Below are positions 2,537 through 7,372 of a DNA stretch of 64,000 bases, piece after piece. The position numbers and the translations under genes were made by a program. Location of the stretch: sequence record MW812342.1, one strand, 5' to 3'. Position 1 is the first letter of the stretch; each line of letters opens with the position of its first letter. The notes below the pieces were generated by a model that did no database searches, was not told the DNA's origin, and was given only the letters and a program-made list of their open reading frames with translations.

Positions 2537-3376
2537 ATGAGAAAGGTGCTTTTCGGAATACTTGCAGCGTTGACGTTTAGCATGTCCGCCGTCGCGGCAG
2601 ACGAAGTAGTCATTACCACAGGACAGCAGGGCCTGACCTATAACTCGGTCTATGGCGTTAATCTGGCCGGTGCTATCAGCGAGTTCGGTACTCGTGCACG
2701 GGTCATCCCGTCGAAGGGGTCATTAGATAACCTCGACAAAGTTGCCGCAGGTGAAGCCCAGATTGGTTTCACGCAGGCAGATGCTTTCCAGTTCTGGCGC
2801 GCTAAGCACCCGAACGAAGCGCAGAACGTTGACATCGTCGGTCAGCTGGCCCGCGAATGTGTGTGGGTCGCTGTCAAGAAAGACGGCAAGGTCAAAGATG
2901 CGAAAGATTTAACCGATGGCGCGAAAATCGCCGTGGGTGAACCGGACTCCGGCTCGTACGCCAGTTGGCAATACCTGCAACAGTTGGTGAAAGAGTATTC
3001 CAAAGCGGAAACTTACGCCAAGGGTGGCATCCGTTCGTTGTCCAAAGTGGCAACGGGTGAATACGATGCGTTCCTGTGGGTGTCTGCGCCGGATAAAGGC
3101 AACAAATTCCTCGAAGCGGTCAATCAAGACAGTTCTGGTTTAGAGCTGATTGACATGAGCACATGGAACGTCAACGACAAACTGCCTAACGGCCAGTCGG
3201 TCTACACGAAAGAAACGGCCAAGACAGACAAGACCGCGTTCTTCGGTAAGAAAGTTGACGTCCCGTGCACCACCACACTCGTCGTGGCCAACACTGACGC
3301 CGGTGATGATCTGCTCGAAACCGTTTCTACCATCCTCCTGAAAAACAATTCACGAGTGATGGGGGACAAAAAATAA
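2537..3376 (+). CDS. TAXI-family (TRAP-like) periplasmic solute-binding protein
   Basis: Signal peptide ending AVAA; ITTGQQGLTY, SKGSLDNL, IGFTQADA and IAVGEPDSGS match TAXI-type binding-protein motifs. Confidence 0.75.
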   Translation: MRKVLFGILAALTFSMSAVAADEVVITTGQQGLTYNSVYGVNLAGAISEFGTRARVIPSKGSLDNLDKVAAGEAQIGFTQADAFQFWRAKHPNEAQNVDIVGQLARECVWVAVKKDGKVKDAKDLTDGAKIAVGEPDSGSYASWQYLQQLVKEYSKAETYAKGGIRSLSKVATGEYDAFLWVSAPDKGNKFLEAVNQDSSGLELIDMSTWNVNDKLPNGQSVYTKETAKTDKTAFFGKKVDVPCTTTLVVANTDAGDDLLETVSTILLKNNSRVMGDKK

Positions 3377-3384
3377 AAATATGT

Positions 3385-3995
3385 ACTGACCCAGTGCATC
3401 TTTTCGGGCTGGGTAGGGTTGATGTCCCTACCTGCGCGGTGTTCGTTAAGGCTGGTAACGTTCGCTGAGACCTGTCGCATACCCGTAAGTCGGCAGTAGC
3501 CGGTTACACAAAAGACTATCGCGTAAGCTGTGAAGTTTCCCCGGTAGGTAACCGACCGTTCACGATTTCATTAGGTGAGCAAATAATCTATGCAAGGACT
3601 TCTAGGATTTGTGCTCGACATGATGGGTAGCTTACGCCGCCTCATCAAGCAGTTACGAATCTGGAAGCTTGCCCATTACTGGTTTACAGGCGAAAAGGCT
3701 TCTCGTGAGAGAGCCACATGCAAACTGCGTATTTACATTAGTATGTTCACGGCTGTGAGCATAGGTCAAGCACCGGAACGATAAGCCGGACAGCTACGCC
3801 TGTAAAATACAATCTGAAAATCATAATGGGATTAAGTTCCCAGATTTGAAAAGGCGACTGTGTGTCGTCGGCGATAACCCCCTGTCGTGGACCAGGTTAT
3901 CCCAAAGGTAATGTGAAAGGGGTTGGTGCTTGGAGGCGCTAAGACCGGCGGATACGCTGGCTCAGAAGAAGAAGTCCATCAACCCCATTCTCACC
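3385..3995 (+). ncRNA. candidate large (~600 nt) structured non-coding RNA
   Basis: No convincing ORF; long-range helices 3521-29/3629-37, 3683-92/3797-3806, 3873-79/3895-3901 and 3919-28/3977-86 plus several local hairpins. Confidence 0.5.
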
Positions 3996-4046
3996 TAAGT
4001 GACTCTTTTACAAGATGTTACTTATATATGCGAAAGCGAGGTGAAC

Positions 4047-4373
4047 ATGGGAACGTATCGTGAAGGCCCTGAAAGCACGGTGACTCACCGTAGTCATGAT
4101 TACTCTGTGGATGCATTGCTGGATATAGCGGAACGTCATAGCCTCGTTCAAATTCCAGTGTCTAGGATAGAATGGATTTTAAACGAGACTACGCTCGAAG
4201 ATGAGCGAGTTAAGAGTGCAGATACAGATTATCCCATTATTGTGCTGCACGAAGGAAGTTTGTATATTGTATTAGACGGTGCCCATCGCCTTGCGAAGGC
4301 GGTTGCCGAAGGCAAGGATACCATTGCAGCCAAGATACTTGTGCCTGCTAATCTACCGAAACCGGTACGATAA
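4047..4373 (+). CDS. ParB/sulfiredoxin-like domain protein
   Basis: PIIV...IVLDGAHRLAKA motif (DG-x-HR); ATG 4047 follows GAGGTG SD. Confidence 0.7.
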   Translation: MGTYREGPESTVTHRSHDYSVDALLDIAERHSLVQIPVSRIEWILNETTLEDERVKSADTDYPIIVLHEGSLYIVLDGAHRLAKAVAEGKDTIAAKILVPANLPKPVR

Positions 4374-4375
4374 AA

Positions 4376-4405
4376 AGTCTAATTACAAGAATACACTGTA
4401 TTATG
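4376..4405 (+). promoter_or_regulatory. putative phage promoter for main tRNA cluster
   Basis: AGTCTAATTACAAGA identical to 1202-1216, with TATG 26 nt from motif start in both copies. Confidence 0.5.
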
Positions 4406-4492
4406 TCGGAAACCCGATTTGATGTTGCACAGGGCGTTACGCTGCGGCGTTTGCCGGTGTGCAGGGTTAGGTCGGGATTCTGGCACCTATTC

Positions 4493-4577
4493 GGCGGGTT
4501 ACTCAAGCGGCAACGAGAGCAGACTGTAAATCTGTTGACTTCGGTCTTCGGTGGTTCGAGTCCACCACACGCCACCA
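4493..4577 (+). tRNA. tRNA-Tyr (GTA)
   Basis: GCAGA-CTGTAAA-TCTGT anticodon arm, long variable arm, TTCGAGT T-loop, ACCA end; one G.A mismatch in acceptor. Confidence 0.92.
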
Positions 4578-4583
4578 AACAGT

Positions 4584-4658
4584 TGGGGTATAGCCAAGCG
4601 GTAAGGCCCAGGGCTTTGATCCCTGTATGCCTAGGTTCGATTCCTAGTGCCCCTGCCA
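4584..4658 (+). tRNA. tRNA-Gln (TTG)
   Basis: CAGGG-CTTTGAT-CCCTG anticodon arm, TTCGATT T-loop, GCCA end. Confidence 0.92.
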
Positions 4659-4664
4659 AACAAC

Positions 4665-4747
4665 GGAAGTAAAGCTCGCTGCTTCGGAAACTCATGGTGA
4701 AAAACCCGTGACCTTCCAGGCCGGTGCTATACCGGATGCTTCCACCA
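4665..4747 (+). ncRNA. degenerate tRNA-like RNA (non-canonical D/T loops, 8-nt anticodon loop)
   Basis: 7-bp acceptor GGAAGTA/TGCTTCC plus ACCA; TCATGG/CCGTGA arm; CCGG/CCGG T-like arm with TGCTATA loop. Confidence 0.65.
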
Positions 4748-4753
4748 AACAAT

Positions 4754-4973
4754 GGTACCTGTCACAGCAGCCCTTGAGGCTTACGCGAAGATGACTGGCC
4801 GCCCATTTTTACCGGGTAACACATTCCTGCCTGCGTGCTATTGCCGCTAAGGTTTGTCCCTGGTGTCGTGCGTCATTCGGGTCTACCCATGCTCTGCGGA
4901 GTGTGCGCTGATGTCTCGATAAACGCCATAGGGCCGCCTTGAGAACTCCGTGGAATTCGGAGGGGTACCACCC
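4754..4973 (+). ncRNA. tmRNA-like cloverleaf RNA with ~125-nt insert in place of anticodon loop
   Basis: GGTACCT/GGGTACC 7-bp acceptor plus A-CC; CTCCG-TGGAATT-CGGAG T-arm directly 5' of the acceptor strand; helix 4797-4804/4931-4938. Confidence 0.6.
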
Positions 4974-5048
4974 ATTCTTGTGTTTCCTTATCCTGAAGAC
5001 ATTCGTAAGACAAATCTATTCATGGTCGAGGAAGCACAGAACCCATTT

Positions 5049-5123
5049 AGGACTGTAGTTCAGTGGGAGAACGCCGCCCTGTCACGGCGGAGGTCGCGGG
5101 TTCGAAACCCGTCAGTCCTGCCA
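5049..5123 (+). tRNA. tRNA-Asp (GTC)
   Basis: AGGACTG/CAGTCCT acceptor, CCGCC-CTGTCAC-GGCGG arm, GCCA end. Confidence 0.95.
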
Positions 5124-5131
5124 GTTTCAAA

Positions 5132-5207
5132 TGCGTCTTAGCTCAGTTGGTAGAGCGCACCCCTGATAAGGGTGAGGTCACTGGTTCAAGTCCAGTAGAT
5201 GCAACCA
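5132..5207 (+). tRNA. tRNA-Ile (GAT)
   Basis: CACCC-CTGATAA-GGGTG arm, canonical D/T loops, ACCA end; 76 nt. Confidence 0.95.
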
Positions 5208-5213
5208 AACAAC

Positions 5214-5291
5214 GGTGTATGTAGTTCAGTTGGTTAGAATTCCGGCTTGTGACGTCGGAGGTCGAGAGTTCAAGTCTCTCCATACACCCCA
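5214..5291 (+). tRNA. tRNA-His (GTG)
   Basis: TTGTGAC anticodon loop, G-1:C73 His identity pair, CCA end. Confidence 0.95.
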
Positions 5292-5296
5292 TTTGC

Positions 5297-5372
5297 ATTC
5301 CCGTCATCTAGTTGGTTAGGATACGACACTTTCACTGTCGGTACACGAGTTCGAGTCTCGTCGGGAATACCA
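5297..5372 (+). tRNA. tRNA-Glu (TTC)
   Basis: ATTCCCG/CGGGAAT acceptor, CGACA-CTTTCAC-TGTCG arm, ACCA end. Confidence 0.95.
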
Positions 5373-5503
5373 TGTTATCCTCACGTAAATCATCGCCGGT
5401 GAGGGGTAAGGCAAGCTCCTGCCCCAATCCCATAATTACATCTCGGCTAAACACCGGGCGCTGTTGGTGTAGATGATACCCACTGGGTGTGAGGGGCCTA
5501 AAC

Positions 5504-5593
5504 GGAGAATTGACTGAGCGGCTAAAGGTGCTCCCCTGCTAAGGGAGTGTATGCGCAAGTGTACCATTGGTTCGAATCCAATATTCTCCGCCA
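5504..5593 (+). tRNA. tRNA-Ser (GCT)
   Basis: CTCCC-CTGCTAA-GGGAG arm, long variable arm, G discriminator plus CCA; 90 nt. Confidence 0.95.
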
Positions 5594-5769
5594 TGTTCTC
5601 TTGCTGTGGGAAATAGAAGCGAACGTAGAAACGCCGGTTAGCTCAAAGCTTAGAGCGTCTCATCTTCGGATGAGAAGGTTGGGGGTGCAACCCGAATTCC
5701 CTATCGGCAACGGCCTGCTTGTCAGGATTAGAAACATCTACGTGGATGGGAACTTCTACAGCAAGAACA
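5594..5769 (+). ncRNA. anticodon-less tRNA-like domain capping a long stem
   Basis: Cloverleaf 5633-5708 (GCTC/GAGC D-arm, TCTCATC-TTCG-GATGAGA arm) enclosed by helices 5623-29/5737-43 and 5600-11/5754-65. Confidence 0.6.
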
Positions 5770-5771
5770 AA

Positions 5772-5970
5772 ACAGTGGGAGCATTGTCCACTGTGACACC
5801 GGCAAAGGTTTCGTACCTTGCAGGTTGGGCGGAAGCCCGATGTTCCCCCGAACGCTGGCCTTCTGGCCGATACAGTGAAAGCTTACCCATGCCGTTGATC
5901 ACCTCTTCTGCTGCTGCCAACACACTGTATCACCGGAATCAGTCCTGCCTTAAATGGCAAGCGTTCACCC
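5772..5970 (+). ncRNA. candidate multi-helix structured RNA domain
   Basis: ACAGTGG/CCACTGT, GGGC-GGAA-GCCC, GAACGCT/AGCGTTC (5850/5960) and GATACAGTG/CACTGTATC (5869/5923). Confidence 0.45.
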
Positions 5971-5974
5971 ATTC

Positions 5975-6052
5975 GGTTCCCCAAGGCGGCTTGGGACATT
6001 ATCTCTCGGCTCTGTTGGGTAATGTCGTGGTTCAACTCCACAGGAATCACCA
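5975..6052 (+). ncRNA. degenerate tRNA-like RNA
   Basis: GGTTCC/GGAATC acceptor plus ACCA, GTGG-TTCAACT-CCAC T-arm, ACATTA/TAATGT arm with 18-nt loop. Confidence 0.5.
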
Positions 6053-6058
6053 AACAAT

Positions 6059-6127
6059 GGCCTCTCGCGATGGTGTGCTAAAAGCGCTTTATTGTGCTGC
6101 TAGGATGGTTCGAATCCGTCAGAGGCA
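6059..6127 (+). pseudogene. pseudo-tRNA (canonical T-arm, 6-nt anticodon loop, no CCA)
   Basis: GCCTCT/AGAGGC acceptor, GATGG-TTCGAAT-CCGTC T-arm, AGCGC-TTTATT-GTGCT arm. Confidence 0.5.
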
Positions 6128-6128
6128 A

Positions 6129-6204
6129 GAGCACCGCTGTTAAGCTGGTTAACACCCGACTCATAATCGGATATTCGCACGTTCGATTCGTGTCGGTGCT
6201 CGCC
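6129..6204 (+). tRNA. tRNA with CAT anticodon (Met or Ile2), atypical
   Basis: CCGA-CTCATAA-TCGG arm, GCACG-TTCGATT-CGTGT T-arm, 8-bp GAGCACCG/CGGTGCTC acceptor, ends GCCC. Confidence 0.8.
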
Positions 6205-6212
6205 CTTTTTTA

Positions 6213-6288
6213 GACTCTGTAGCTCAGTTGGTAGAGCGGATGACTGTTAATCATCAGGTCACAGGTTCAAGCCCTGTCAGAGTCGCCA
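6213..6288 (+). tRNA. tRNA-Asn (GTT)
   Basis: GACTCTG/CAGAGTC acceptor, GATGA-CTGTTAA-TCATC arm, GCCA end; 76 nt. Confidence 0.95.
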
Positions 6289-6559
6289 CATTTTGCATTG
6301 CCCGAGTCCCGAATGACATTCCGGAAAAATATCATCCATGGTCAAGGGCAGTGCAGAACCAAATTCCCGGCCCTTGCAGATAAAGCTTACCTGCATTAGC
6401 TGTCCCCTGCGGGGGTCGGGTACCACCTTTGTTCGTTTTGTTTTTTTCTTTCAATTGCCTGGCGGTATTGGTGGGAACAAAACGAATGAAGCCCTAGCGG
6501 GGGAAAAGCCGCTAACAACAACAGAAGCAGTAAAAACAGAAGTAAAAGCAGGAGTAGTT

Positions 6560-7372
6560 ATGTTTACTATCTTACGTAAAATCAATGGTAACCGCACACC
6601 AACCGAACACGAATCCCCAACGCTGGGTGATACGAAGTCACAAGTGTTCAAAGATGCGATGTCGCTTCTTACCGAATCCAACAACGTGCATAATTGCATG
6701 GATTCTGGAATGGATGCGAAGCCGTGGATTAACGGCAAATCTAAGCCTGTTGAAGAATGGGTAGAGCGCTTTAAGAAAGCGTTTGAGGTGGTCGACCCTG
6801 ACCCACAAGAGCTTATCGATCTGGTAAGTGAACTTTCTCCAGGAATGTTTGACAAAGCAAATGCGCGTTTTGCATCTCACTTTGGTCAGGTAGAAGATGC
6901 CTTCCTGAGAGACACCGGGCAAACCATCATCTGGTTAATACCTAAAGGTACCCCGATCGATAGCCAGTTCAAAGACATTCCACGCCAGTCTGTTGAAACC
7001 CTCCACACTACACTCGATTTCATCGAAGCTGATGAGATGAAGTTTGCTGTGTTCAATAGCAAGGCATTGTGGGATGGGTATAACTCCGCTGAACTGTTTG
7101 GCGGTGTAGCCACCGAGATTTCCTCGGTAGAACTCCAGCACATCTATCACGACGATATGGCGATGCCGCAAGAAGCGGTACTCAAAGCCAGCCGTCGGGG
7201 TGACCGTACGATGGAGCAGGTCATCGGGGTCCTTGCTTATGGCAACTCCGAAGAACCCGACCCTACCACGGGCAATGTGCCGGTCACAGTGATGACCTAC
7301 GAGTTTATCTACCAAGGCGATGAAGTCTACGTTACGAACCGTCACGGTAAGACAGTGGACTCCATCCGTTAA
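6560..7372 (+). CDS. hypothetical protein
   Basis: ATG 6560 after AGGAG SD (track start 6338 runs through structured non-coding sequence); 270 aa. Confidence 0.75.
   Translation: MFTILRKINGNRTPTEHESPTLGDTKSQVFKDAMSLLTESNNVHNCMDSGMDAKPWINGKSKPVEEWVERFKKAFEVVDPDPQELIDLVSELSPGMFDKANARFASHFGQVEDAFLRDTGQTIIWLIPKGTPIDSQFKDIPRQSVETLHTTLDFIEADEMKFAVFNSKALWDGYNSAELFGGVATEISSVELQHIYHDDMAMPQEAVLKASRRGDRTMEQVIGVLAYGNSEEPDPTTGNVPVTVMTYEFIYQGDEVYVTNRHGKTVDSIR

Follow-up and report, generated by a model that had tools for sequence, protein, structure and literature searches.

RNAC and RNAD of bacteriophage T4 are matured together with transfer RNAs (tRNAs) and have tRNA-like ends. Ever since these small stable RNAs (species 1 and 2 RNAs) were found on the tRNA strand within the phage's tRNA cluster, it has been known that such clusters can hold RNAs other than tRNAs, whose function is unknown and whose roles are still obscure (PMC3014915, PMC9697503). 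The large structured GOLLD and ROOL RNAs of phages and prophages, which often lie near tRNA islands, indicate that RNAs in such places can be elaborate machines, again of unknown function and purpose (bioRxiv 10.1101/2024.12.08.627333). Here, we describe a locus at positions 3385 to 6560 of the Erwinia phage pEa_SNUABM_10, which sequence comparison indicates to be a same-strand block of nine ordinary tRNA genes and about a dozen other conserved structured RNAs. Its closest analogue is the T4 pair, with GOLLD and ROOL comparable more loosely. As in T4, the array elements share the strand of the closely packed tRNAs that surround them, a likeness of location and kind. T4, however, has two such RNAs, whereas the array here has about eight, together with an upstream module of ~600 nucleotides (nt), and the families are common to SPN3US-like phages and some other jumbo phages. 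What is new here is the presence of several undescribed families, unusually dense and headed by a conserved module of leader, open reading frame (ORF), and RNA. The reading that we favor, if with measured confidence, is that the block probably yields both tRNAs and non-decoding structured RNAs from one precursor that is matured by the tRNA-processing machinery.

The window analyzed comprises 64,000 nt (positions 1 to 64000 of MW812342.1); it is 100% identical to pEa_SNUABM_10 (Machinavirus, 238.9 kb), and its coordinates are those of the phage genome. pEa_SNUABM_10 is a jumbo phage related to SPN3US. Its nearest relatives are pEa_SNUABM_6, 42, and 43, the Salmonella phage pSal-SNUABM-04, Machina, Huxley, and Parshik (we shorten pEa_SNUABM_4, 6, 9, 10, 11, 29, 42, and 43 to SNU4, SNU6, and so on, and pSal-SNUABM-04 to pSal04). 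The same gene order is found in more distant relatives, namely, ChrisDB, Caitlin, SNU4, and SNU9, which are also filed as Machinavirus; SPN3US and other Seoulviruses; the Erskineviruses Stratton, Asesino, and phiEaH2; and the Wellingtonviruses Wellington, Kwan, and SNU11. Genomes of this type carry split multisubunit RNA polymerase genes of the phiKZ-like type.

A preliminary description, made from the letters of the window, had counted nine tRNAs between 4493 and 6288, and ARAGORN and Rfam agreed on exactly these: tRNA-Tyr (4493-4577) and tRNA-Gln (4584-4658); tRNA-Asp, tRNA-Ile, tRNA-His, and tRNA-Glu (5049-5372, with gaps of 5 to 8 nt); tRNA-Ser(gct) (5504-5593); and tRNA-Met followed by tRNA-Asn (6129-6288), of which tRNA-Met (6129-6204) has no encoded CCA. 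These tRNAs, like the window's elements between 3410 and 6487 that are described below, are on the + strand. Both tools also found tRNA-Trp and tRNA-Cys upstream of the nine-tRNA array. The same description had pointed to five tRNA mimics without a usable anticodon loop, beginning at 4665, 4754, 5633, 5975, and 6059. All five are present, and we refer to them as E1 to E5, the third and fifth being less clean examples. E1 (4665-4747; fold z = -3.5) is cloverleaf-like and ends in ACCA; its acceptor helix has 7 bp and its "anticodon" loop 8 nt. E2 (4754-4972) is a giant tRNA-like RNA in which an acceptor helix (GGTACCT pairing with GGGTACC) encloses a D-like hairpin, an expanded body, and a T arm (CTCCG-TGGAATT-CGGAG), with ACC directly following. 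E3 (5633-5709) has an acceptor helix of 6 bp and a D arm that is normal, but a UUCG tetraloop stands in place of the anticodon loop, the T loop is enlarged and aberrant, and there is no CCA. E4 (5975-6052) ends in ACCA and combines an acceptor helix and a canonical T loop with an "anticodon" stem of 10 bp, while E5 (6059-6128) has a 6-bp acceptor helix and a canonical T arm, lacks CCA, and abuts tRNA-Met.

None of the five offers a 7-nt anticodon loop with a 3-nt anticodon: the loop has 8 nt in E1, 4 in E3, at least 8 in E4, and 6 in E5, and E2 has a body of 125 to 222 nt across its family. An acceptor helix stacked on a T arm and followed by a discriminator and CCA is found in E1 (ACCA), E2 (ACC), and E4 (ACCA) and in part in E3 and E5. 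The AACAAY spacer that had been reported to follow a CCA ahead of 4665, 4754, and 6059 as well as tRNA-His can be read directly in front of E1, E2, E5, and that tRNA, and spacers of 3 to 9 nt precede mimics and real tRNAs alike.

Loops of the 8-nt type combined with an encoded CCA, as in E1 and E4, might suggest unusual decoding tRNAs, with expanded loops for four-base codons or stop suppression or with short insertions that are removed. The E5 allele of pSal04, a weak tRNA at 38.9 bits in Rfam, would fit such an explanation. Against it, the D loops are missing what is needed for docking onto a T loop, the loop of E3 and the body of E2 are of the sizes just given, and there was no group I intron or transfer-messenger RNA (tmRNA) signal, ARAGORN and Rfam both finding no tmRNA. 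Moreover, the Rfam tRNA model (RF00005) matched none of E1 to E5 in the window even at E ≤ 10, and ARAGORN in its default and -ps modes returned nine tRNAs only; at 80% stringency it added E4 (8-nt loop) and E5 (6-nt loop) as "tRNA-???". We regard odd decoding tRNAs as the most improbable of the explanations weighed here.

The E2 family is found in four genera, at lengths of 125 to 222 nt, with an NCC tail and always with an AACAAY-type linker in front. Its acceptor helix covaries across genera (GGTACC/GGTACC versus GACAC/GTGTC), as does the D-like hairpin; the T arm, CTCCG-TGNNATT-CGGAG, is invariant within the family, and internal motifs are conserved. Among the "acceptor plus T arm" RNAs, which include tmRNA, viral tRNA-like structures, and mascRNA, the paired ends, T arm, NCC tail, and large non-tRNA body of E2 follow the plan of the tRNA-like domain of tmRNA. 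E2 differs from tmRNA in that both a G3-U70 pair and a tag reading frame are missing and its length is only 125 to 222 nt. Matches to the E2 signature in four IMG/VR loci (L038, L040, L043, and L044) were rejected as chance matches within coding DNA.

The plan shared by these elements is enriched on one strand. We scanned positions 4374 to 6560 for a closing 7-bp helix with an adjacent hairpin and NCC and obtained 22 matches on the + strand, compared to 2.3 ± 1.5 in shuffled sequences, 1 on the - strand, and about 1 per kb per strand in the rest of the window. The scan picked up E1 and added three elements of the same plan, namely, G1, S2a, and S2b. G1 (5378-5498), which is closed by a CCTCAC/GTGAGG helix and precedes tRNA-Ser, is present in this phage alone among Machinaviruses. 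Homologues lie inside the tRNA arrays of unrelated Klebsiella/Serratia and Shewanella phages of ~270 to 300 kb (Klebsiella LPKP23 and Shewanella SXP01); across these unrelated phages the closing helix covaries and a core of ~45 nt is invariant. In LPKP23 (L046:1324-2433) and SXP01 (L047:190-2595), the G1 homologue sits in 1 to 2.4 kb of unannotated sequence beside the tRNA arrays, and in LPKP23 this stretch has seven + strand matches to the pattern of closing helix, hairpin, and NCC versus two on the - strand.

The upstream module of ~600 nt consists of a leader (S1a), a small ORF, and a second RNA (S1b), all conserved in four genera. S1a (3410-3557), a leader RNA of several helices that precedes the small ORF, is found in 16 phages of those genera; of its 29 predicted pairs, which are 98.2% paired overall, 18 have changed on both sides, which none of 500 shuffles matched and for which slid controls gave 2 to 6. 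It has what would be looked for in a riboswitch-like, cis-regulatory leader, a conserved multi-helix fold immediately 5' of a conserved ORF. The ORF, pEaSNUABM10_00011 (3590-3784, 64 amino acids), is intact in 16 of 16 relatives, with 55 to 64 codons, in-frame indels, and a shared motif, and its ratio of nonsynonymous to synonymous differences (pN/pS) is 0.12 to 0.93, mostly well below 1. The product matches phrog_26199, a PHROG without assigned function, and has no Pfam match. By these signs of coding constraint, the ORF appears to be a real small gene. At its 3' end the ORF runs into S1b, the first hairpin of which overlaps the last codons and contains the stop codon.

S1b (3765-3992), a structured RNA of ~225 nt, is the most widely conserved element of the locus, occurring in 17 phages of the genera Machinavirus, Seoulvirus, Erskinevirus, and Wellingtonvirus. 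Of its 42 pairs, 14 show double changes, 97.9% are paired overall, and this level was reached by 0 of 500 shuffles. In the Erskineviruses Stratton and Asesino, S1b ends 6 nt ahead of a tRNA-Gly, which in effect makes S1b the array's first unit. The neighboring ORF at 4047-4373, which lies outside the RNA set, matches phrog_17560, and is annotated as ParB-like in relatives, is an insertion in the Machina subgroup only (L001-L007), and only there does it part S1b from the tRNA array. In SPN3US (L008:2154-3456), nearly all array tRNAs have been lost, whereas S1a, S1b, the small ORF between them (which is not annotated in that phage), and an H element (described below) are retained; this locus also contains two weak tRNA-like sequences, at 37 and 31 bits.

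The preliminary description had taken 3385-3995 for one of three long multi-helix RNA segments. All three are indeed strongly structured, but this one is not a single pure RNA, given the 64-codon ORF kept in all 16 relatives, and the segment at 5772-5970 resolves into two units, S2a and S2b. As to a single fold across the 600 nt of the upstream module, the genera are divided: the mid-ORF region can pair over 9 to 12 bp with the 5' portion of S1b in two of them, the Machina- and Seoulviruses, but not in the Erskine- and Wellingtonviruses.

As an RNA module with many covarying helices at the head of a tRNA array, S1 resembles GOLLD and ROOL; it differs from them in containing a conserved, translated-looking ORF and in being confined to one phage clade. 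Kinship with YrlA, GOLLD, and ROOL, which the preliminary description had named as occurring near phage tRNA genes, was not supported. The GOLLD and ROOL models of Rfam had no match at gathering or at E ≤ 10 in 3380-4000 and 3300-6600 and none in the loci of 14 relatives. YrlA is similar in being a noncoding RNA with a tRNA-like module, although its ends form a Ro-binding stem and not an acceptor helix, and its model (RF02553) reached 23.4 to 23.7 bits versus a gathering threshold of 69, with matches that just span the Asp/Ile and Met/Asn tRNA junctions. S1a and S1b had no Rfam match. A host origin of S1b was rejected: blastn found no match to it in all complete Escherichia coli genomes, and a search for its motif in 185,579 genomes of bacteria and archaea returned eight matches, all judged to be chance by an nhmmer profile. 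More generally, Rfam 15 recognized tRNAs only in the window, in its subregions, and in the 14 relatives' loci, consistent with the earlier suggestion that the RNAs are undescribed.

Given how strongly the tRNA arrays differ even between close relatives, one might suppose that these segments consist of defunct tRNA copies and residual spacer DNA in a fast-turnover array. The loss of nearly all of these tRNAs from SPN3US, the degenerate appearance of E3 and E5, and a locus tag (00020) that GenBank skips in this region would be in keeping with such decay. The substitution patterns argue otherwise. Synonymous divergence in the flanking genes is 0.14 to 0.33 between SNU10 and SNU43, pSal04, or Parshik, and every noncoding element is below this, at 2 to 12% divergence. 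In addition, compensatory changes were found in S1a, S1b, E2, E4, the H elements, G1, and S3. E4 evolves fast, at 85 to 88% identity, and four of its pairs are doubly compensated among close relatives, with pairing kept by most of the other changes. Elements are conserved across genera at ~70% identity, and SPN3US has kept S1a, the ORF, S1b, and the H element despite the loss of the tRNAs. Because the divergence lies below the synonymous rate and the changes are compensatory, we reject neutral tRNA decay, to which we give very little credence. Decay of old tRNA copies was the outcome that the preliminary description had named as counting against it.

The skipped tag, pEaSNUABM10_00020, falls between tRNA-Ser (00019) and tRNA-Met (00021), in window positions 5594-6128; a feature predicted there, probably E4 or E5, seems to have been dropped before GenBank deposition.

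In bacterial tRNA maturation, RNase P reads the stack of acceptor and T arm together with the 3' RCCA, and exonucleases and the CCA-adding enzyme finish the 3' ends. It is because of these rules that we read the locus as encoding a single precursor that is cut into tRNAs and structured RNAs. The phage's own RNA polymerases would transcribe the block from 3385 to 6560. Several of the array elements appear to retain only those tRNA features that maturation reads, namely, a closing helix of the acceptor type on which a T-arm-type hairpin is stacked, together with an encoded NCC or NCCA, around bodies that cannot decode. Host RNase P would cut the long precursor 5' of each acceptor-type helix, and the 3' side would be trimmed, with the CCA-adding enzyme completing the end where needed. 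The products would be tRNAs and stable RNAs, from tRNA-sized up to 220 nt. The weakest step, a guess, is the last one, in which the released RNAs may act in trans by occupying proteins that recognize the upper half of tRNA.

Architecture, conservation, covariation, and cassette turnover are directly observed in the sequences; that the elements are transcribed, processed, and stable is our inference. Evidence pointing this way comprises the strand-specific excess of the architecture, the common spacers, covariation, low divergence, cassette behavior, and the position of S1b beside a tRNA in Erskineviruses. The cotranscription and coprocessing that had been proposed for the mimics are compatible with the spacing and with the acceptor, T-arm, and NCC(A) ends. 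Several observations weigh on the other side. The architecture scan is a relaxed one, with a background of about 1 match per kb. The structure of E1 is one fold only, its copies having no sequence variation from which covariation could be assessed; E2 and G1 do not stand out by their minimum free energy z-scores (-1.4 and -0.9); and E3 and E5 lack CCA, the T arm of E3 also being aberrant. Literature searches turned up neither a description of the RNAs nor a transcriptome from any member of the phage group. The role in trans is pure conjecture, and requirements in cis alone could account for the conservation of the folds.

This last point leads to the alternative that the elements are punctuation acting only in cis, that is, former tRNAs kept folded for orderly cleavage and folding of the polycistronic precursor and without a role of their own after release. 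The best-conserved parts are the ones that processing enzymes read (acceptor helix, T arm, and NCC), bodies are freely exchanged at the E3 and E5 slots, and E5 abuts tRNA-Met, which itself has no CCA, all of which such punctuation would explain. It would not explain why the internal motifs and the covarying D-like hairpin of E2 are kept in four genera, why the long stem of E4 is upheld by double compensatory changes, or why the G1 core of ~45 nt is invariant in unrelated phages; furthermore, in many relatives tRNAs lie 3 to 9 nt apart without spacer elements. We consider punctuation in cis unlikely, while taking it seriously. We rank the options with RNAs that act in trans by binding proteins that recognize the tRNA top half first, followed by punctuation in cis, nuclease decoys, decay, and odd decoding tRNAs.

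The array elements also appear, from comparison of the relatives, to behave as exchangeable cassettes, as suggested by the position of E1, the sharing of G1, the alleles of E5, and endonuclease genes. Copies of E1 that are ~99% identical occur in SNU6 and, at another array position, in ChrisDB and SNU9, and E1 is absent elsewhere; ChrisDB was its sole match in IMG/VR. E3 is 96 to 99% conserved within the Machina group, and in SNU43 its anticodon arm has been exchanged for a version with a 7-nt loop between identical flanks. The E5 slot is hypervariable within one genus, where three unrelated bodies are flanked by similar acceptor and T arms: the type of SNU10 and SNU43, the near-normal tRNA of pSal04, and a 97-nt form in Parshik and Machina. 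ORFs for HNH_3 (and NUMOD4) homing endonucleases lie inside the tRNA arrays of SNU6 (L002:4311-4829) and SNU29 (L013:4557-5093); the one in SNU6 truncates E4 and takes the place of E5 and tRNA-Met.

This turnover is also what might be expected if the elements absorbed host nucleases or toxins that target tRNAs, which is the speculative counterdefense role that the preliminary description had proposed. Hypervariable bodies within conserved handles (E3 and E5), the fast yet compensated evolution of E4, the horizontal spread of cassettes, and the homing endonucleases in the arrays all resemble arms-race loci, and one report documents phage tRNA loci as antidefense loci shaped by a homing endonuclease (PMC13096335). 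Most known tRNA-directed effectors, though, read the anticodon or the variable loop, which are absent or distorted here, and the elements would thus be poor decoys for anticodon nucleases. No defense-related gene or motif was linked to the elements, and the best-conserved members, S1b and E2, are not variable. We view a decoy role as doubtful, and more so than punctuation in cis.

The boldest reading of the block would be an RNA-centered system peculiar to jumbo-phage tRNA arrays. In this system, expression of the array would be set by the S1 leader in response to a metabolite, to a tRNA, or to the small ORF being translated, and the released E1, E2, E4, G1, and others would constitute a new class of trans-acting RNAs that occupy tRNA-recognizing proteins of host or phage or assemble into particles like those of ROOL and GOLLD. 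So detailed a scheme is a long shot. Whatever their role, several undescribed families meet at this one locus (S1a, S1b, E2, E4, G1, and the H elements, with a further family, F4, in relatives), and their covariation is strong enough to define structures. The families reach SPN3US, a genetically tractable model, and G1 at least is also found in unrelated jumbo phages. If the elements give stable products, this would show that phages routinely exploit tRNA maturation as a general route for making other RNAs, and the families would offer a comparative handle on what these RNAs do. In current phage annotations, the stretches are either empty or hidden beneath spurious ORFs or odd "tRNA-Ile(aat)" calls.

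Further elements complete the block. S2a (5779-5848), supported by the scan and by its fold, is cloverleaf-like, closed by GAGCATT/GATGTTC and followed by CCC, and is 94 to 97% conserved. S2b (5850-5969; fold z = -4.1), also a scan match, is closed by GAACGCT/AGCGTTC and has an adjacent hairpin and an ACC end; conservation in ChrisDB, Caitlin, and SNU4 covers its 3' 35 nt, and the homologue in Caitlin has the same fold. H1 (4975-5043; fold z = -3.9), recovered as an nhmmer match, and H2 (6291-6358) are two occurrences of a 68-nt hairpin element and paralogues of each other, and the alignment of their family (A7) has five covarying pairs. H2 comes right after the array's last tRNA in each of the genera, and SPN3US is no exception.

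Relatives carry additional elements. The F4 family, of ~120 to 150 nt, occupies array gaps in ChrisDB, SNU4, SNU11, pSal04, and SNU6 and is not in the SNU10 window; copies lie at L010:3368-3500, L012:4371-4494, L015:2662-2783, and L004:2680-2832, and 8 of 19 predicted pairs covary. SNU43 (L003:3406-3506) and pSal04 (L004:3568-3654), at approximate coordinates, have an extra tRNA-like element that ends in ACCA, has a long extra arm besides its canonical T arm, and goes uncalled by both ARAGORN and Rfam; in SNU43 it takes the position that tRNA-Ser has in the SNU10 window. Among the tRNAs themselves, tRNA-Met (6129-6204) has the lowest score in the array, 41 bits, and essentially zero spacer after E5; in Parshik and Huxley its anticodon loop region is different and the ARAGORN call is lost.

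At the 3' end, a 14-bp GC-rich hairpin with a U-rich tract (6366-6420; S3a fold z = -4.6), overlapped by a terminator-like match and with compensatory changes in SNU43, pSal04, and Parshik, is a candidate for the end of the tRNA transcription unit. A long hairpin at 6431-6487, in the leader of the coding sequence at 6560-7372, has a compensatory T-A to C-G change in relatives. We rejected an extended ORF at 6338-7372 (344 amino acids), annotated in Parshik, Machina, and Huxley, which would make this S3 stretch coding but has an in-frame stop in SNU43 and pSal04; the stretch from 6338 to 6559 is therefore noncoding. The gene start at 6560 has a strong ribosome-binding site in front.

Sigma-70 promoters and intrinsic terminators were not found above the level of shuffled sequences, the empty sigma-70 scan being explained by the phage having its own split multisubunit RNA polymerases. 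A 30-nt motif (AGTCTAATTACAAGAnTACnCTGTnnTATG) with a TATG end has exactly two copies in the 64 kb, at 1202-1231 before tRNA-Trp and, on the + strand, at 4376-4405 before tRNA-Tyr. Both are just upstream of a tRNA unit, with 0 copies expected by chance, and the motif is a candidate promoter of the tRNA unit for a phage RNA polymerase. Paralogy between positions 100 to 480 and the S1a leader, at which two short repeats had hinted, was ruled out by alignment. An AT-rich 24-nt motif occurs at 121-144, before the first small genes, and at 3368-3391, directly before the S1 leader, and may be a second type of promoter.

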